A DNA stretch of 64,000 nucleotides, from positions 496,001 through 560,000 of the forward strand of contig BQFW01000004.1 of the NCBI GenBank assembly GCA_020891255.1, given 5' to 3'. How positions within the stretch are numbered: the first letter of the stretch is position 1; every line of letters begins with the position of its first letter. The notes under the pieces were generated by a model. The model was not told the origin of the DNA. It did no database searches and saw only the letters and a list, made by a program, of their open reading frames with translations. The DNA comes from Entomortierella parvispora E1425 (taxonomy: Eukaryota > Fungi > Mortierellomycota). The position numbers and the translations under genes are program-made. This document shows, piece by piece, positions 15,501 to 25,631 of this stretch.

Positions 15501-17860
15501 TATGAGAACATGAGAGTAGAATGTCAATCTTCCTGTTGTTCGCCTCATGTTTTTTTTTGTTGTTGTTTTCATTGTTTTAGTTTTTTTTTTTTTTTCTATT
15601 CGTCTCAAACTGATGGGCCATCCCCTTACCGTGGTGTTGTCAAAGCAAAGACATTTCTTGGGGATAGGACTGCAGATATCATCCTTGCCTCCTGGTGCTG
15701 GTTGGCATCCTGCTGGAAGGCATTGGTGCTTTCGAAGTGGCACAGAGCCCTTCTTGCATTGGTAGAGCCCTGTCTCCTCCCATCCGCAGGTGTAAACCCA
15801 GTTAGAACCACACACATCACCATCACGCGTGCAGAGGCACTCCTTGGGGACTTTGTCGATGGGCTCACAGGTGGCAGAACCGTCTTCACTCGCATATGTA
15901 CAGATCGACTCTGCACCGCACCGTGTCTTGATCTCCGCCGACTTGTTGTTTCCACTGGGACAGTGATAGACGGCGCCCAGAATAATCTCTCCTCCCAGTG
16001 CAGAAGCACATTCCTCTTGGAAATCAAATCCACACATCTCCTTATAATAGCGGCATCCGCATGGGTTTTCATGGGGTTGAATCTCGCAGGTGCCTTTGTG
16101 ATCCTCAGCATGGCACAGGGCATTCGCACCACATTTTCCCTTGAGCTCTGGCTTGGATCCTTTGCCTGCACACTCGTATGCAGAGTTGGGAGTGCGACCG
16201 CATCGAGGGTTGGGACCAGTACAGAAGGGCTGGTCATTGACACATGGACAAGGATCCGTTTCACCAGGTTCCATACATAAATCAGGCTGGCCCTCTCTGG
16301 TAGCGCATCCTTCAACACAACTCTTGCGCTTGATGGGCTCACCACCCTTGGTGGGACATTGGTAGAGGGTGTTTGCATCCTTGGAGCATGACTTGTCGAA
16401 GGCCGATCCACACACCTAGTTGCAAGGAAGATATAAAGATCATTAGACCTGATACATGAACGTCGACGAAACAATGGCTCCACAAGACAATCTACCTACA
16501 TCATCAGTACCCTTGCAGGCACAAGGATCTACTGGACGAACGCTGCAGGCATCATTCGAGCATCCATTTGAGCAACCCTGAGAAGCACTAGGTGCTTGAC
16601 CCCTTGTACATGTGTACAGGCTGTCTTTAGCAAAGTTACATACACCTGGGAAGCTTGATCCACAGGCTTTTCCATTGGTCTTGCAAACACACGTGCTCTC
16701 CACAGGGGGATCGGTGGGTTGAGGATTGGAGGTGGTGGGGTTCGCAGTTGGAGGTGGCACAGGCGGGGTCGCTACAAGGGGACCCCGTGTCGGGTCTGCA
16801 CCTGTCGGAGTGCTCTTACCCCCGTCACCACCTTCGGTTTTGCGGTCGCCATTGTCGCCAGCGATGCTAGTCGGCTCTAGAGGGCCATCAGTGGGAACAG
16901 GGGAACCAGGACCACCAGTTGCAATGCCATTGTCACCAGTAGTCGTGGCTGGGCCAACGATCGGCGCATCAGTGGGCACTCCCGTGGGCACACCATAAGG
17001 AGTCTTTACTGCAATCTCTAGGCCAACGGTGGGTTTGACCGATGGTGGAGCTGTGGGCACACCAGAAGGAGCCTTAACTGCAATCTCTAGGCCAACGGTG
17101 GGTTTGACCGATGGTGGAGCTGTGGGCACACCAGAAGGCGCCCTATCTGCAATCTCTGGACCGGCGGTGGGTTTGACCGATGGTGGTGATGTGAGTAAAG
17201 CTATGGTCTTGTCATCGCCACCTCCACAGGATCCATTGTTGCAGCCATTCGCACACGTCTTCACGAAAGTAGGCTTGTCTCCCTGTTGAGAGCAGGTGTA
17301 CACGGCCGAAAGGATAAAGTTGCATCCAGAGAGGTTGCTACCACAGAGCGTGCCACTGCCTACACAGAGGCCAGCCCAAGGATGCTTCTCCTTCTTGCCA
17401 CCCTTCTTGGCCTTCTTCTTCTTGCCATGATGGGATCCCTTCTTGTGTTTGTTGTGTTTCTTGACAGGGACATGCTCAGAGTCGAAACTGTCGTCGTCAG
17501 AGTCTCCATCTTCGAAGTCGGCAGTGTCGTCGTCGTCTCCGTCCTCTGTCTTGTCGTCGTCTCCGTCCTCTGTCTCGTCGTCGTCGACATCATCGAAATC
17601 AGCGTCCTCATCCGATCCGAGAGCCTCGGTGACGGGGGGTCTCGACGACAGCACATTCAGTCGGGAGATTGTAACAGGGTTGTTCCATGTTGATGATCTG
17701 GACCTTCAGCTCACCATCGCTTTGGTTCTTGAGGCATTGGTTCGGCTTTTGGAAGATAGAGCCGTCCGGGGAAACGACCTTGGGAGCGCGACAGATGATG
17801 CTGTCAATCACAACACGCTCGCACACCAAATCGAGGGTGCCAGGGCAGGTCAAATCAAGA
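12531..17860 (-). CDS. Large cysteine-rich repeat protein (~15 eight-Cys modules, acidic/His-Lys and Pro/Ser/Thr linkers, helical C-terminal domain), probably secreted; 5' end missing here
   Basis: ORFs 12531-16415 and 16443-17654; introns 15495-15629 and 16416-16499. Module CxC-x6/7-CG-x6-C-x7-Y-x-C-x12-C-x3-C-x9-C is repeated ~15 times. Codon-biased frame continues upstream to ~17860 across a +1 shift in the G6 run at 17634-17639. No start or signal peptide next to it. Confidence 0.75.
13333..13520. repeat. 60-bp coding tandem repeat (~3 copies; SPSASPTAVPDPPASSTDPP)
   Basis: Near-identical units gaagatgctggtgggtcagg/acactgctgtg...cgaaggagaaggtg with 60-nt period. Confidence 0.9.
16984..17187. 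repeat. 69-bp coding tandem repeat (~3 copies; PSGVPTAPPSVKPTVGLEIAVKA)
   Basis: Repeated gtgggtttgaccgatggtggagctgtgggcacaccagaagg with 69-nt period. Confidence 0.88.
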
Positions 17861-18060
17861 AAGAAATGGATCGACGGTTGTTCGAATTTATTGTGCCTTT
17901 CGAGAAAAAGTACAAAGAAAAATATTAGTTATTCTGTGGCCAATTTTGATTTGATGTGAGCAGCAATGCATTTGAGCTTAGAATACTTACATAATTTGAG
18001 CTGAGACTCAATTCCTGCATGGCACCTGCTTCGGTGCATGAGGACTGTGATGGTTCCCCA
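17860..18060 (-). ncRNA. Candidate Fanzor omegaRNA (scaffold plus guide) overlapping the 3' tail of the Fanzor ORF
   Basis: Position matches TnpB/Fanzor omegaRNAs (established knowledge). Bulged 12-bp stem-loop TCCT-CAT-GCACC-[GAAGCA]-GGTGC-c-ATG-c-AGGA at 18013-18044, a small TTGAG..CTCAA hairpin and a duplicated AGCTCAAAT just downstream. No expression evidence. Confidence 0.25.
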
Positions 18061-21000
18061 GTCGAAGTCGATCTGGTGTTGGAAGAAAGCGACCAGGTGG
18101 GTCGCTTTGGGTCAAAGGGTGGCAGCGTGGCTCGGTCCTCTGGGTCCGATGTGACGAGAACATAGCCCGCCAATGCAATGTTGACCGCGGCATTTGTGTC
18201 GCGTCCTCGTTGGGTGTATCCCACCTTGTACGATTCGCAGTCAGGGTTGGTGCATTCGATAGCACCGTGGACACGAACCAATCTCGTCTCCCCCATCCTT
18301 CTTTCTCCGTGCTCGCGCTAAACGGACCAACTGGAAACAAAATGGACAAGTTTGTGACGACTTGTGCTCGGGGGTCTTCGCGACTGGGGTGTACCTCATG
18401 TGCCTCTCCGGCACCTTATTCCCCCCCATTTTCGAGTGCCCCTTCAATCGTGACCCTACACCCATACCTGCATCACCGTGTAGCATGAGCGGAATCACAA
18501 CTGGTCTCGACTTTGGGCAAGTTTCGAGGTGTTGGAGGGACATCCGTGGCCTCTCCGGGCTTGTTCGATCTAGCGTAGGTTCAGGTCGGTGATGTATACC
18601 ACACTTGAGGCAAAATCCGTTGGTCTGAAGTCGGGGCGGGGCCGTTATCAGCAAAGAAGATATTAGCGGAGACTGCAATGATGATGGTGGCGAGGATGCA
18701 TCTGCAGTAACTAGACGGGCGAAGAAAAAAAAATCCAATCAATCTACAGCTCTGTGACATTTGGCTAGCCCCTTTTCATTTTCTGTCAACTTACTGTTGG
18801 CCTGTCGGCTGAACGCTTTCCTCTCCTTCGCCGCAATACGATCATAAGCGCGCCTTAGTTGTAGTTCTTTGTAGTGTCGGAGATTCTGCATCTTCTTGCT
18901 GTTTTCGAATATTCGAAGGTCTTTCCGTACCCTTCGTCGCAGCTCCTGGGCCTCCTCAATGGCATGTGAGGTGCTTGCTCGTGTGATGGAAGTATCAGCA
19001 AGCTTGGTGTATACTTCGGATATCGTCTCCGGCCCGGCCATCCCTGGGATTGTCGTTTCGGTGACCATCTTTGATCGTACTTGGGACTGTCTAGTCAACC
19101 CTCCATGATGTCGGATATTTGACGCTTTGGTCTGATGTGCCGCGGGAAACCTCATCTGCTGAAGAGTAGCAGGAACATAGTCGGGCGGCTCAGGTTCAAT
19201 ACCCGCCAAGACATCAAACCTGTTCTTCATAGAGATGAGGGTGCTCTCGGGAACGGGGACAGTGTTGAAGAGGACGTGTGCCCCTGGATCCGTGCCTCCT
19301 GGCATCAATACCATCTGTCTATTGGTGGGATCCAAGTTGTTGTCCTCAATTTCTGCCACCAACCGCTTGATATTTATCGACTCTGCCTTGTCGAGGCAAC
19401 CAAGTCGACGGATTGTGGGATTTGAGGAGAATGGGCCGGCAGGAACAGAGGAGGATGAATTGACAGGGGCCGAGGAGGAAGAACCGGCAGGGACCGCGGA
19501 AGACGAGCTGGCAGGGGAGCTGGCAGGTGCTGAAGAGGCCGATGACGACGAGGATGTTGTGGAGGAGTAGTATTTGTTATGATCGTACTTCTTTTGTCGT
19601 AGGTCTTTGATTTCCGCCCGCATGCGCAATATTTCACGTTGAACATCATGAAAATCATTACGCATTTTCTGCATGTTGGTCTTAAATTGGTCGGTCACCG
19701 ATACTCGAGCATCCTGAAAATTGGACTTCAGGGTCTTGAGTTGCTTCTCAAGATTAGCTGCTTTTCTGTTTCGTCCTTGAAGGGCCTTTTCCTTTACTTT
19801 GATAGTATCGGTAAGGTCGTCTGCGATCTTTTTTGCCTGTGGCTTCGTCATTCCCTCCTTTTCTAGTTCCTGCTGCCTCAGTTGGTTGTAAGAAGGCTCC
19901 CGCTGCTTTTTCGATTTCTTCGTCTTAAGCCTCTTTTCCTTGAACAGGTTCTTTGGGGCATCTTTTCGAATCCCATGTCCCATAATTCGTACAGTGTTTT
20001 TGTCGACAAACAGAAGCCTGTCGTGCACAAAGTGAAATGTTATGTGTTATGGTCATGTTCTTGGTAATGTTCGAATACAATGTCATTCACTCTTGGCACA
20101 TTCCCTCTTACCGATCAGCAAATACAAGCCCGTATTTTTGGCAGATGGAATGGATAACACTCATATCGAAGAAGGCGCTGAATATGACGGGTGCGTTTTT
20201 TACTCCAAGTGCCTGAGTTGAACACAAGGTTCCTTCGGCATCGAAAACATCAAAATGCTCCTTCTTTGATGAACAAAGCGCCTCCCGAATCCCTGTTGAT
20301 CCCAATGGGAGTGGATGAAGTTTTCCTGCAGACGATATCGGATAGAGCTTCCTCGTAAAATCGCCAAACCCCATCGCATGCAGTAGATGATTCGCCAAGT
20401 AAGCAAACGGCCCTGTCGCTAGGACATGTCGAGGGATGGTGCCTGATGTGGGCTTTGGTGTAAAGGGTCTAAGTGCATTGATGATTTTCACCGCTGCATC
20501 GACCTCGTTCTCCTTAAACGTGTGGCTGTCGAAGAGATGTTGTCGTACAATGTCCTTTGTGACCAACCCCGACAACTCGCCGATATCAAGTAATTTGCAG
20601 ATCACTGTTTCCAAACCGCGGAGGTGCTTCGAGGTTGGCTCCGCTTTCCGCATTAACTCTAAAACAGGAATCATGTACAAGTCAGACACCACATAGTTTA
20701 AATACACAATGTCGGGGATTGGTATGACCTTACCTTTTTCAGCGGCCGCTGCATGGCAAGGGTCAGAGGTCGCATTCTCACTACCCCCTTTCACCTCCTC
20801 CTCTTTGGCCTCTTCCTCCAGAGCCTCTCGGAAACCGTCGTCCTCATCCATCTCCTCATCGTCATAGTCGCCATCGTCACCCAACATAACCTCCTGGTGA
20901 TCGACATCATCGGTAGAGCCCTGAGACTGTGTGCTGGCTATGTTGATGAGACGGAGCAATCTTTGGACACGGTCGACACGCGAATACAATGGTTCATTGT

Positions 21001-23356
21001 CCGTCGGATCCGTGAGAATCAAAGTTGATCCAGACCACTCATTGGTGCATTTGCGAACGGTCCGATCCAACTGATCCAATAAAGAGAAAAGTTTTTTCCT
21101 TCTTCTTGACTCCACCCGATTTCTGGGCTTTCGAGCGGCCTTACTGTGCATTTTTTTTTCAGCCCATTTCTTTTTGTTTTGACGGTATCGCTCTTCGCCA
21201 AGGGGTCGCAAGTGAATTCTCACGAGATATCGAACCACTGCCCTTTTTATATCGCCGTAGATATTTCCGTTCCAGATATTGGCAATGTCGGTTGCAGCCG
21301 TTCTCAGCAGAGTGTTCAGTGTCTGCGATAATCCTGCTGGACATTCGGCGTTTTCTCGGAAGTTGTCGTCATCACTGGCTGTCTTTTGGATACACTCGAC
21401 CAACGTTGTCCAATCTGCGTGATTGTTCTCCTTCTCCGTCTTTCGCTTTTTCTCTGCCGGCTCCGAGTCCCTGTCTGGAGGAAGAAGCTTCTTGGCGAGG
21501 AAACCCAAGAAGTTCTGGCTGAAAAGATCGCGTAGATCAGGCACCACGTCGGCGTTCTTGTCCTCGGACTTTGTGATTTTCTTCAGGAGGTCGTGAGAGA
21601 CCTTGGCAACCCTGACCACGGGATCTTTCTGAAGTTTAGGATCGCGGATCTGGAAGCCGGCAGGTAGAATGCCTGTGATATCTACATCCTCCCAGTCGTC
21701 ACTCAAACAGCCCCTAAATACCTGTAGTGGAAACAATGCTCAAAATGTTAGCAAGAGATTGATCGTGATATTGAAAACAAAACCGTTCGTCACAGAGCTT
21801 ACCTCCACATGTGCCTTCATACATGCCGCCTGCACCTCTTCCATGTGGTCCGATAGAAGCGTCTGACTCTCACCGAGTAGATCGATGATTGCTTCCTTCG
21901 TATCGGCGTCAAACTCTTTGCGTAGGATCCTCTTTATAGGCAGATCGCACACACGAATCAGGGTCTCCTTGTCTAGGTCGTCCTCTTTCATTCTCGGCTC
22001 GACCTCGTTGGCGCTGCATTTCTCCTTCCTTTCGACAGCGTCACGCCAAAACACCTCGAAGTTGTCATTTACAAACACTTTGAAGATCTCCAACTGTCGA
22101 TCGTCAAGTTTGTCCACAAAGTCCTTGACTGATATGCTGCCTTGTGGTCTTCTCAGATTTTGCTCCAAATCTCTAATTGCGTCTTGAAGAACATTCTGTG
22201 GTAATCGGGTTCGAGTAGATTCCTTTTCCAGCAGGCTGGCTCGGGAGGCTTCCATTATATCTGCATCATCGACTTTTCTTTTTTTCTCTTGCTGGTCTTC
22301 CGGTCATCAATTTTTTTGACGGCCACCTCAACACCGCCTTTCACCACTTTCCTCAAGTGCCATGTACTATATGCATGACAAATATGATGTTAGGGGCCTG
22401 GGAATCGTTCAATAGGTTCATTTCCCTATACCAGTAAATACTTACCACTTTCCGAGGAAGCACCTTTCTGCATCCTCAAGATCAAATCCAATCTTGTCTT
22501 TTCTGTAGGTTTGGTGTCTTGCTCCAGGACAATACTTTGCAAGTGGTGTTCCTTGCGTCGACGGTAGACCGGCTGACAGGGCGGTGACTGGTGGTGCGAC
22601 AACCGGGGACACAAATACGGATAGCGGGGAGACTGATGGAGCGGAGGTTTCTGGTGCAAGGATTGATGGCGTAGAGACCGATGGCAGTAGCGATTGGATT
22701 ACCTGCGGCGCAACATTTGAGACAACTAGTGGGCAGTAGGTCCGCATATGTTCAAAGGAATCAGCGACGTGCACTAGTGCGACGATAGGCGCGAGAAATG
22801 GCTCTATGACAAGAGTAGAGGCGCGCGTGGAGACGACAACGATCTTGACTTGCAAAAGATGAGCGAGCCTGCGCATAAGGAGCGTTGAAGGCGTCAGGCT
22901 GATAAAGTCATCGGCAGCGGAGTCTTTGAAGCCAAAAGCAGTTTGTCGGGTGCGGTTCATAACGTCAGCAACAAGGGCGGAGAGGGTCTTATTGCACTCG
23001 TCGATGACGAGCCCAAAACGCTGTTGAAGGACCTTCAGAGTCTTTTGAACATTTTCCGCCCCTGGAAGAGCGTTGCTTTGATCACGTAAGAGAAAGTCCA
23101 CGCGTTGCTGCAACAACAGTGCTCCCTCTTGAGTCTGCTCGGACAATCGGCTATTTGCCTCCTCTACAAAATCATCATCATCGATGAACGAAATTGTCGT
23201 CTGAAAAGGGGAACATGAGTACTGTGTGGGCTCGCTGACGATAAGAGCAGACAGTCCAAAGTAAGAGGCATCCAGTACCTTTTTCGAAGAGGCGCCAGAA
23301 ACATCCAGCAAGTGAATCTCCATGTCCATGTCCATGGAATCTTGGCTGCTCGACAT
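17888..23356 (-). CDS. Fanzor (eukaryotic TnpB-like RNA-guided RuvC nuclease), Fanzor1-like, ~1,640 aa, intron-containing; two single-base homopolymer frameshifts
   Basis: Exons 23356-22446, 22366-21803, 21721-20112 (probable internal 75-nt intron 20659-20733), 20017-18748, 18624-17991/17925 keep phase once the indels at T7 22279-22285 and C5 18290-18294 are corrected. RuvC-I GGTDPG (D at 19288-19290); GDAGMGVGSRLKGH; RuvC-II TPEHKSSQTCPFC (E at 18367-18369); Zn ribbon CPFC...CTNPDC; RuvC-III RDTNAAVNI (D at 18198-18200). Confidence 0.85.
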
Positions 23357-23407
23357 TGCTTCTTAGCCAATGTCCATAAACTTGGAGATTAGGGACGGGT
23401 ATGGAGA

Positions 23408-23531
23408 GGATGTTAGAATGCCGAGAGGATGTTAGGGGTGCAGGAAGGATGTTAGGGCGCAGAGGGGATGTTAGGGTGCAGAAAGGATGTTAGGGTGCAG
23501 AGGGGATGTTAGGGGCGCAGAGAGGATGTTG
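23408..23531. repeat. 19-20 bp minisatellite (~6.5 copies, GGATGTTAGGG(T/C)GCAGAGG) just upstream of the Fanzor start
   Basis: Read directly. Most units contain TTAGGG; on the - strand each contains CCTAAC. Confidence 0.9.
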
Positions 23532-23624
23532 AGGTGGGCGAAGAGAGGAAAGAGACGCGCGACCGCGGTTCGTGGCTCTCTGGCTGCTGGCCAATCATCT
23601 ATTCGCATCCTTCACGTATTCGCA

Positions 23625-23634
23625 TTGTCACGTG
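23625..23634. promoter_or_regulatory. GTCACGTG E-box ~270 bp upstream of the Fanzor ATG
   Basis: ttgtcacgtg; the same motif lies upstream of two other TE-borne genes. Function is inferred. Confidence 0.3.
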
Positions 23635-23759
23635 GAATTAGCCGAGACTCGGCAGAGATGTCGAATCAGATGGTCTTCCAGAGAACATTGAATCTTCGGA
23701 AGCTACCCTCTCCTGCTGTTCACAATCGGAAAATCGGCGATTTATCTGACCCGCCACCA

Positions 23760-24500
23760 TGGCAGCACAAATGAATGTGAGATTCCTACCATCAAATTTG
23801 TGCGCACATTCGAGAGTCCGACTCGCCCACCTGGTGTGCGCTGACCGGCCGATGCCAAACCAAATGTCAAACTGTCCAAACACTCCCCGGCTAATCTCTT
23901 CCAGATCTTGGAGGAGGACAACTATGAAGAAGCTACTGAAAGAGCATGGCGCATGGAGCGGAAGCATGGAGTAAGTTTACATTGTTGTCCATATGTTCGC
24001 TTATTTGACTTACCCCGAAACTCGTGCCTCAGGAAACAGCGGTGGTTCAGGATCGACAATCCAGCGAGCAACAGCATCACGCAAAGCGGCAGCGGTTCAG
24101 AGGATATAATAGACAGTTGAGAATGGACAGATACAACCTCTAGGATCCATTACAAAGATTTTGTTTACGCAGAGACCTGCCCAATATGCTCGATTGCCTG
24201 ATCCAGAGGAGCCTTTAGAGATCCCAACAACCGCCACTTTCGTTCAAGCACAGCACTTGGTTCACAAATAGCGCAGGAAGATAGACGGTGATGGACTCAA
24301 GAAAAAACAGATGGAGCTCAATTCAAACGGATTCGATTAAAGCCAGAGGACTTATCTCTTCTTGTGGATGTGGAGAGCCTACGGACGACTCTTAACCTCT
24401 CATAGCATGGCTTGAATGGCCTTGTCCATCTACAACAGGCCGCTCTCCCTCGCCCGCTAGAGAATATGGAAGATATCAATCGTGTAGATTTTGATTGACA
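23760..24500 (+). pseudogene. Decayed spliced ORF of unknown family, convergent with the Tc1 transposase
   Basis: Protein-like stretches ILEEDNYEEATERAWRMERKHG|ETAVVQDRQ joined by GTAAGT(23971)..CAG(24032), followed by frames interrupted by TAG/TGA stops and shifts. Confidence 0.3.
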
Positions 24501-25631
24501 CGTTTATTGCTGGACCAAGTATAAATAAAGTCTATGCTCCAGTCCAAAAAATTCTCCTTCAGGCCATCGGCGTCATAGCCACAGTGCGAAAACAAATTGA
24601 TGGCTATAGGTTTTGTTTTTGCACATGCCTTGAATGCAAGGTCTAGAACGATTTCCGGTGCCTTGGCATAAACAAGATTTGCATTCTTTTCAATGAAGCG
24701 TTTGGTTAGAGAGAAACCAACCTCAATTGGGTTCAATCGGGGAGAATAAGGAGGAAGAAAAACGAGAAATGCCCTCCTACTCTCAATTGCTTCCCGGAAT
24801 TCGCTATACATAGGAATGCGAGCATTGTCTATAACTACAAAGGAGTTAGGTAGAGGGTAAGGTTGAAGGTGGGGTAGAATCTTCTCGACAAATGCATCAT
24901 GAAACGACTCCCGCGTGAATGTTCCAGTAGTGAATTCCCAGGCAAGAAAACCTCTGTAGTTAAAAGCAGCCAGTGCAGAGACACGAACCCCCCGTGAAAA
25001 AGGAATATTTACAATAGTTGGCGTATTGACTGTGGAATAGGCGTACGACCTCAAAGCCGCTCGTCCGTCCTTGCTCGTCTCATCAATAAATCAATAAACA
25101 CAAGCTGCTCTGGAAAGAGGTACAGTTCCTTCATATTTTGTCGAAACCACTCGATTTCCTGTGGGTTTGACTCGCGTGCTCGTTTCTGCAACTTTTTTCT
25201 CGAGAGATTCAGATCATTTCGTAAAGCACGGCAAATTGTGGAGACTGATGTATTCTGCAGATCTGGAATTCAGGTCTAAGCTCCTCTTGTAGCTCCTCAA
25301 GGAAGAAGCAAGGATGGTGTTTGGTATATGACTCGACGAAAGTCAACACATCTGGTGGCCATCGAGAAGAGTTTTTGCGCGTATGTTCAATGTGAACGTT
25401 CCCTCTGTTGTTGAAATGACCTGTCCATGTCCAAAAAAAAAACCCCCCTAAAAAAAAAGAATAAGAAAAAAAAAACGCGAAGGCGACGCGACTCAACAAC
25501 GCTGACTTACGAGTCCATTTCGTGATCGTGTATTGCGAAATGCCTAGCGACACTGCCACAGCAGACCTTGGCAGGTCCATTATATTGTAGAGCTTAATGG
25601 CGCACCAGCGAATATCGTCTGAAAAGGTCAT
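24476..25631 (-). mobile_element. Tc1/IS630-like DD34E transposase pseudogene
   Basis: HTH N-terminus MTFSDDIRWCAIK; intron 25421-25510; LVFIDETS, VVIDNARI(P), FLPPYSPRLNPIE with 34 residues between the second D and E. Frameshifts at ~25265 and at an 8-bp duplication 25083-25098. Confidence 0.88.

Follow-up and report, generated by a model that had tools for sequence, protein, structure and literature searches.

How large can a Fanzor grow while its gene appears to stay intact? Fanzors are, to our knowledge, the only RNA-guided DNA endonucleases of eukaryotes, and the question is raised by a minus-strand gene within a multi-copy element of the fungus Entomortierella parvispora E1425. The gene is found in a stretch of 64,000 nucleotides (nt), here called the window (assembly GCA_020891255.1, contig BQFW01000004.1, positions 496,001-560,000), and all positions given below refer to this window. 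An earlier note, made from the DNA letters, described the gene as a Fanzor of very large size, interrupted by introns and with its D/E/D catalytic triad intact; the sequence signature, a profile search and the predicted fold of a paralogue all agree with this description. Very probably, the locus encodes a giant Fanzor1-type nuclease of 1,652 amino acids (aa), as a seven-exon single gene of a Mortierellaceae-specific mobile element. The protein is ~2.7 times the usual Fanzor size; a mean of 620 aa is given by Jiang et al. (PMC10530073), and Yoon et al. kept candidates of 500-1000 aa (10.1101/2023.08.09.552727).

The catalytic signature is located in the C-terminal part of the protein. The five motifs quoted from the letters (GTDPG, GDAGMG, EHKSSQTCPFC, CTNPDC and RDTNAAVNI) were all found on the minus strand. 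The Fanzor regular expression of Yoon et al., i.e., DPG, 120-280 residues, a Glu six before [CH]xxC, a further Cys and RDxxxxxN (10.1101/2023.08.09.552727), matches the window protein at aa 1246-1587, and it also matches P0040, an intact paralogue. Across 24 family members, the RuvC-I Asp and Gly are invariant. The best PDB match of a profile built from the C-terminal part of the family (A3) is SpuFz1, chain 8gkh_P (E 0.0027). In this alignment the family Glu falls on chain residue 935, taken as E541, and the family Asp on residue 1000, taken as D606, a numbering that presumes a 394-residue MBP offset in the 8gkh_P chain. E541 and D606 are experimentally defined catalytic residues of SpuFz1 (PMC10432273). 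The canonical RuvC-II strand reads LHGDAGMG in the window protein and LHGAAGSG in the paralogues, with no conserved acidic residue at this site. When a profile of the whole region (A1) was compared with the PDB, coiled-coil matches dominated and the C-terminal columns were lost.

The fold was predicted with AlphaFold2 for two parts of P0040, a paralogue that shares 43% identity with the window protein. The models cover residues 760-1570 (alignment depth 36 sequences, mean predicted local distance difference test score, pLDDT, 71) and residues 1-1000 (alignment depth 17 sequences, mean pLDDT 74); the latter contains no RuvC. Comparison by AlphaFold and Foldseek had been suggested as a check of the fold, and when run on P0040 it places Fanzor1 structures first for both halves. 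With the C-terminal model, Foldseek places seven Fanzor1 structures at the top of its PDB matches (E 1e-4 to 8e-3), above Cas12o, Cas12X and Fanzor2, and VIA-align superimposes P0040 residues 1149-1532 on the RuvC/TNB part of SpuFz (363-633, Z 13.8). The best Foldseek match of the N-terminal half is PpFz1 (E 0.018). Here, residues 386-966 align with the WED plus REC domains of SpuFz (18-341, Z 15.4), residues 385-999 with PpFz 103-540 (Z 13.9), residues 387-998 with GtFz (Z 11.7) and residues 385-968 with Cas12f (Z 7.4-7.9).

Because the N-terminal model best matches Fanzor1, most of the supposed extra N-terminus is an expanded WED/REC lobe. Hence, the ~800+ additional N-terminal residues of the earlier description shrink to ~430 that lie outside the core, residues ~437-1020 being part of the lobe. 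What is found beyond the Fanzor1 core comprises these ~430 residues (an alpha/beta domain and a helical region), insertions inside REC, an antiparallel coiled-coil hairpin of ~95-110 residues followed by a Ser-rich disordered linker, and a conserved CxxCxxHH...CP module before the old RuvC-II strand. A coiled coil and a Ser/Ala linker had both been anticipated; the hairpin and the Ser-rich linker are located between the last WED strands and RuvC-I, in exon 5 of the window gene and in the model of P0040. The additional zinc-binding insert that had been proposed is also real and conserved, as the CxxCxxHH...CP module, although the splice junction quoted for it was wrong (see below). The helical part of the N-terminal extension is shared with uncharacterised Mucorales proteins of 333-1,154 aa in AFDB, one of which is named Cas12f1-like TNB domain protein; their alignment to the P0040 model starts only at about residue 192 (E 1e-19 to 1e-15). 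The extension gave no Pfam or PDB-profile match (the profile A7 returned noise from the PDB), and an ESM Atlas feature search with the N-terminus yielded uninformative scores of 0.40-0.70. Neither Pfam nor the fold search detected a PIN/XPG domain. An OTU deubiquitinase was considered as the identity of the first domain and rejected, with a Z of only 4.3-4.5 and candidate catalytic Cys/His positions that are not conserved.

The exon structure was determined by aligning contigs from three public runs (X1, X2 and X3; Logan contigs, which may lose rare variants) to the region. X1 has the character of genomic DNA from the same organism (89% of sampled words are present, and many contigs show zero differences). 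X2 originates from the same sample and behaves as RNA, because the segments skipped at its contig joints begin with GT and end with AG when read on the minus strand. X3 is from a different sample, and its copy of the element is ~5-7% divergent over long pieces. The gene had been assembled from six minus-strand open reading frame (ORF) pieces (22442-23356, 21740-22255, 20108-21736, 18739-20028, 18241-18738 and 17925-18296) joined through GT..AG introns into ~1,640 aa. Splicing of this kind was borne out, and the X2 contig joints correct the count to seven exons, six GT..AG introns and 1,652 aa. The gene spans 17888-23356, and with homopolymer lengths taken from the read contigs its coding sequence (CDS) is 4,959 nt, i.e., 1,652 codons without an internal stop. 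Five of the joints, checked against RNA as had been suggested, are seen directly in the RNA-like X2 contigs, and the sixth is deduced from a contig that ends at 17990, past which the loose letters TTATTGTG are the reverse complement of CACAATAA at 17895-17888. P0040 is annotated to terminate in ...STYSQ, in the same manner as exon 7 of the window gene. The junction that had been read as KCHRA to TNGFC did not hold: KCHRA is intronic, and the real junction joins RQAN to ITADASS (intron 18711-18794, the same as in the genome annotation). Transcription and splicing of the gene are shown, at least for its near-identical subfamily.

The genome annotation divides the locus into models of 314 aa and 1,081 aa, the latter (P0003) being identical to part of the window gene. 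Taken at face value, this split would mean two adjoining genes within the element, an upstream gene (exons 1-4) next to a Fanzor of ordinary size (exons 5-7), and it is in line with the observations that no one RNA contig covers all exons and that many database models end at exon borders. Such an arrangement is very hard to credit, however, as exons 2-5 code for the WED/REC lobe, which any Fanzor requires, and exons 5-6 code for RuvC. Furthermore, all introns, including those at the exon 1/2 and exon 4/5 joints, are spliced out in X2 with the protein frame continuing. The annotations of P0040 and P0021 each give one protein, and the arrangement is collinear in five paralogues and in another genus.

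The single, seven-exon gene belongs to a family of which phmmer, run exhaustively with exon 5, recovered only 37 relatives. Among the ten that were looked up, all those labelled with an organism are from Mortierellaceae, the others being JGI/IMG, ENA or Logan contigs; judged from these sequences, the family appears to be specific to Mortierellaceae. Two relatives are full-length, EMPS_06637 (P0040; 1,570 aa) and P0021 from Gryganskiella cystojenkinii (1,731 aa), and each of them, from the N-terminal domain through RDTNAA(V/I)NI, runs collinear with the window gene. The genome of E. parvispora harbors at least six paralogues. The loci L001, L003, L004, L005 and L007 are paralogues rather than orthologues, because they are found in the same assembly as the window; in L003, L004 and L005 exon 6 is readable in a single frame. 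In the literature, we found no paper that links Fanzor by name to Mortierella or Mucoromycota and none on a coiled-coil-bearing Fanzor or one of 1,500-plus aa, where absence from the searchable literature is not a proof of novelty. A table by Saito et al. includes a 677-aa Mortierella entry, which is of a different type.

The gene is carried by a multi-copy element with a sharply defined 3' end. Contigs of X1 and X3 part at exactly 17888/17887 into 3-4 different flanks, and the word depth is 240-290 within the element compared to 72 in the flank. These distinct flanks, together with the raised depth, indicate ~3-4 near-identical copies of the subfamily. The paralogous loci L007 and L005 share 98.4% identity over 5,488 nt, with similarity extending from ~170 nt upstream of the ATG to exactly the stop codon; they share the end ...CACAATAA, while their flanks are unrelated. 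In L001, DNA identity to the window begins at 23599.

From the above observations, the element is taken to be mobile rather than domesticated, because 98%-identical copies at unrelated loci share a sharp 3' end. A domesticated or catalytically re-purposed Fanzor would bind DNA under RNA guidance or serve as a nuclease in a different role, with its N-terminal domain acting as an effector instead of contributing to transposon maintenance. The conservation of the ~430 N-terminal residues with their weak OTU-like fold hint, as well as the lack of a transposase in the element, would be consistent with such a role. We nevertheless consider it improbable, since the triad and the zinc ribbon are intact and conserved, the near-identical copies are dispersed, and the candidate catalytic Cys/His of the OTU fold are not conserved.

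Whether the gene of this mobile element is intact depends on two frame breaks, which had been described as 1-nt homopolymer indels and the only lesions of the gene. Their locations were correct, but the indel at 22278 amounts to 2 nt, and data from the three runs indicate that both are most likely assembly errors rather than real lesions. The G-run 18290-18294 contains 5 G in the assembly and 4 G in every covering contig of X1, X2 and X3. Similarly, the A-run 22279-22285 contains 7 A in the assembly and 5 A in every covering contig, two letters being absent at 22278 (X1, X2 and X3). Across both corrected runs, the frame agrees with those of the paralogues, including P0040. A true indel variant would probably have been visible, because variants with single-nucleotide polymorphisms (SNPs) at ~1/4 depth persist as separate X1 contigs. 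In all likelihood, both frame breaks are thus homopolymer errors of the assembly. The run lengths of the read contigs open the CDS for 1,652 aa, and the gene is therefore most likely intact. The earlier note had allowed for an intact or a recently inactivated gene; with read contigs across 18290-18294 and 22279-22285 giving one open frame, the former is favored.

If the indels were instead real, the window copy would be a recently dead pseudogene and the corrected contigs would derive from 2-3 near-identical sister copies. The copy number and raised depth of the element would allow this, as would the ability of Logan contigs to lose rare variants; in addition, the genome's own annotation (P0003) halts at the breaks, and the paralogue L001 is truncated at its 3' side. 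This explanation is unlikely, though, because the run lengths of the assembly occur in none of the contigs across three runs, while SNP variants with roughly one-quarter of the depth survive as contigs of their own in the same run. Both breaks are situated within homopolymers, a classic error of long-read assembly, and the remaining 4.96-kb CDS is free of stops.

At the 3' end of the element, the last ~190 nt are conserved among paralogues that share ~43% protein identity, even though they code for a disordered tail. RNAalifold predicts helices in the final 90 nt of exon 6, where 89% of cells are paired compared to 21-41% with slid partners, and these helices contain 11 pairs with compensatory change, a result matched by 0 of 500 shuffles (six sequences). 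Because only six sequences were available, the structure signal is suggestive rather than a proof. Among the introns, the sixth stands out with 72% identity between the window and L007 (z 3.6), whereas introns 1-5 are at chance level. By eye, the published omegaRNA scaffold of PpFz and the 3' end in the window have in common a short stem-loop, GGTAAG, a later ACTAAT and a T-run; Rfam gave one chance match only over 17-24 kb. Collectively, these data support, but do not prove, a candidate omegaRNA that spans the last intron.

A number of observations weigh against the assignment to a giant, intact Fanzor1-type nuclease of a mobile element. No Pfam model reached threshold in the six ORF pieces and five homologues, where the sub-threshold matches were to TNB and coiled-coil noise. 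The TNB model PF07282 (Cas12f1-like_TNB / OrfB_Zn_ribbon) scored 10.2-16.9 bits (E 0.007-0.86) compared to a gathering cut-off of 26.3; because the scores fall below this cut-off, the family is annotated as hypothetical protein. In searches of the PDB, neither phmmer with the C-terminus of P0021 nor the RuvC-I profile A4 found a match. From the alignments, D1246, E1525 and D1581 would cluster into one active site, and the predicted WED-REC-RuvC-TNB fold was judged on the paralogue rather than on the window protein itself. At the ends of the L005 and L007 copies, neither terminal inverted repeats nor a target-site duplication could be seen, and no transposase gene was found within the element. 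This particular copy may still hold both indels, because the element is multi-copy and contigs can lose rare variants. Finally, the omegaRNA has the status of a candidate.

Judged from its family membership, the window protein may perform omegaRNA-guided cleavage. In such a mechanism, the protein would bind an omegaRNA derived from the structured last ~125-190 nt of the element, including the last intron, and flanking sequence would serve as the guide. The triad D1246/E1525/D1581 would cut the matching DNA, and this cleavage would favor persistence or spread of the element, a role that has been proposed for TnpB and Fanzor. The added parts, i.e., the N-terminus of ~430 aa, the near-doubled REC lobe, the coiled-coil hairpin with its Ser-rich linker and the CCH(H)C module inside RuvC, would most likely have a role in access to the nucleus or chromatin, in oligomerisation or in R-loop stabilisation.

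A more speculative, and rather doubtful, scenario is that the guide RNA overlaps a spliceosomal intron, such that one primary transcript is either spliced to mRNA or kept unspliced as guide RNA, within a Cas12-sized Fanzor lineage that has acquired a doubled REC lobe, a coiled coil and a new N-terminal domain. In this scenario, both the 94-nt intron 6 and the 9-nt exon 7 with the stop codon are part of the omegaRNA/right-end region. If so, the overlap of guide RNA and intron 6 would couple nuclease dosage to guide production, and the doubled REC lobe, coiled coil and N-terminal domain would confer properties unseen in Fanzors of 600 aa, e.g., a longer heteroduplex, dimerisation or chromatin targeting.

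TnpB became Cas12 through domain accretion. This conserved lineage of 1,570-1,730 aa, which is expressed and apparently intact, shows that eukaryotic descendants of TnpB also grew by domain accretion, and that the giant Fanzor lineage reached or exceeded the size of Cas12a. Surveys that filter on length or Pfam may have missed this family, because Pfam annotation fails and gene callers usually fragment its models. The lineage would offer a natural experiment on how an RNA-guided nuclease in chromatin is affected by an enlarged REC lobe, a coiled coil and an added N-terminal domain, on the coexistence of guide-RNA production and splicing, and on the spread of a transposase-less Fanzor element.

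Further observations concern other copies of the element and its surroundings. The locus L001:8388-12594 is a degraded paralogue, 87.5% identical, with frame changes and truncated just past RuvC-I; some of its frame changes may be homopolymer assembly errors, too. A solo copy of the last ~165 nt of the element is found at L005:859-1022 (minus strand), 76% identical to the end of L007 and with the same terminus ...GTCACAATAA; it could be a ghost or a 5'-truncated remnant. At 21146-21203, in the Lys/Arg-rich REC insertion, X1/X2 contigs of a sister copy swap 56 nt for 13 other letters, which constitutes an indel polymorphism. The 19-nt repeat array of the 5' leader (Table 1) may be a promoter or a protein-binding array. 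Beyond the 5' end of the element, a Tc1/mariner-like transposase ORF is located at 24476-25054 (to ~25631), and L003, L005 and L007 are without such a neighbor. It was considered as a mobilising partner and rejected, being outside the element (24476-25631) and with no Tc1 next to the paralogue loci; it is probably an unrelated insertion, because these loci have no counterpart. Directly downstream of the element, at 16443-17654 (minus strand), a 403-aa ORF rich in Asp/Glu, Pro/Thr and Cys shows low transcription in X2 and holds 69-nt tandem repeats (16984-17193). No CRISPR array was found in 15-27 kb of the window.

Table 1. Positions of the element, its gene and the parts of the encoded protein in the window.
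Feature	Position	Strand	Remarks
Multi-copy element, ~5.5-5.7 kb	17888..23600	-	3' end exact, 17888; 5' end approximate, 23600-23660
19-nt tandem repeats, six to seven, TTAGGG-like cores (GGATGTTAGGG)	23404..23549	.	5' leader; also in paralogue L001
Exon 1	22446..23356	-	aa 1-303; ATG at 23356-23354
Intron 1	22367-22445	-	X2 joint 22366/22446; 79 nt; GT..AG
Exon 2	21803..22366	-	holds A-run 22279-22285
Intron 2	21722-21802	-	X2 joint 21718/21800 (cut +3); 81 nt
Exon 3	20734..21721	-	X2 joints
Intron 3	20659-20733	-	X2 joint 20658/20734; 75 nt; in-frame inside ORF piece 3; junction also in annotated P0003
Exon 4	20112..20658	-	X2 joints
Intron 4	20018-20111	-	X2 joint 20016/20111 (cut +1); 94 nt
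Exon 5	18795..20017	-	end of WED, coiled-coil hairpin, Ser-rich linker, RuvC-I
Intron 5	18711-18794	-	X2 joint 18710/18795; 84 nt
Exon 6	17991..18710	-	CxxCxxHH...CP module, shifted RuvC-II Glu, TNB zinc ribbon, RuvC-III Asp, G-run 18290-18294
Intron 6	17897-17990	-	94 nt; X2 contig stops at 17990, then 8 terminal element letters
Exon 7	17888..17896	-	9 nt, two codons plus stop (...SNY/AQ, stop); stop 17888-17890; end of element
N-terminal extension	21998..23224	-	alpha/beta domain 23224-22721, helical region 22525-21998; AlphaFold2 pLDDT 70-95 in these blocks
Expanded WED/REC lobe (predicted)	19966..21967	-	model aa ~437-1020; mapped from P0040 alignments
Coiled-coil hairpin, aa ~1061-1155	19845-19561	-	exon 5
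RuvC plus TNB (predicted)	18096..19395	-	model aa ~1211-1615; mapped from P0040
GTDPG (RuvC-I)	19296-19282	-	aa 1244-1248; Asp1246 codon 19290-19288
CxxCxxHH...CP module	18612-18508	-	exon 6
GDAGMG	18477-18460	-	motif match
EHKSSQTCPFC	18369-18337	-	Glu1525 codon 18369-18367; E1525-HKSSQT-C1532
TNB zinc ribbon	18348-18237	-	exon 6; CPFC...CTNPDC
CTNPDC	18254-18237	-	motif match
RDTNAAVNI (RuvC-III)	18203-18177	-	Asp1581 codon 18200-18198
Conserved 3' terminal region, candidate omegaRNA scaffold/right end	17888..18081	-	helices 18076-18058, 18045-18012, 18011-17996, then intron 6

Among known systems, SpuFz1 (PDB 8GKH, 9CEU-9CEZ) displays the same order of WED, REC, RuvC and TNB as the window family. 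The two also share the Asp of the RuvC-I strand, the Glu six before CxxC, the ribbon half ...HG..(E/G)CTNP(D/N)C... and the RD of RuvC-III, at a sequence identity of only 8-15%. SpuFz1 is a protein of 638 aa; its gene, a single intronless ORF, is part of an element of 2.1 kb whose inverted repeats measure 30 nt (PMC10432273). In contrast, the window gene has six introns and encodes 1,652 aa, and its element showed no inverted repeats. The WED/REC lobe comprises ~580 residues in the window protein compared to ~325 in SpuFz1, and the window protein adds the ~430-aa N-terminus, the coiled-coil insert and the CCH(H)C module. PpFz1 of Parasitella parasitica (PDB 9CF0/9CF1) likewise comes from Mucoromycota-grade fungi and has an FRI insertion that binds cyclophilin (PMC11423790). 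TnpB (ISDra2) and Cas12f share the RuvC/TNB core and the WED/REC plan with the window family. In TnpB, the canonical RuvC-II Glu is found ~50 residues before the zinc finger, where the window family has G(D/A)AG. TnpB and Cas12f are prokaryotic proteins of ~400-500 aa encoded by intronless genes, whereas the window gene is eukaryotic and interrupted by six introns.

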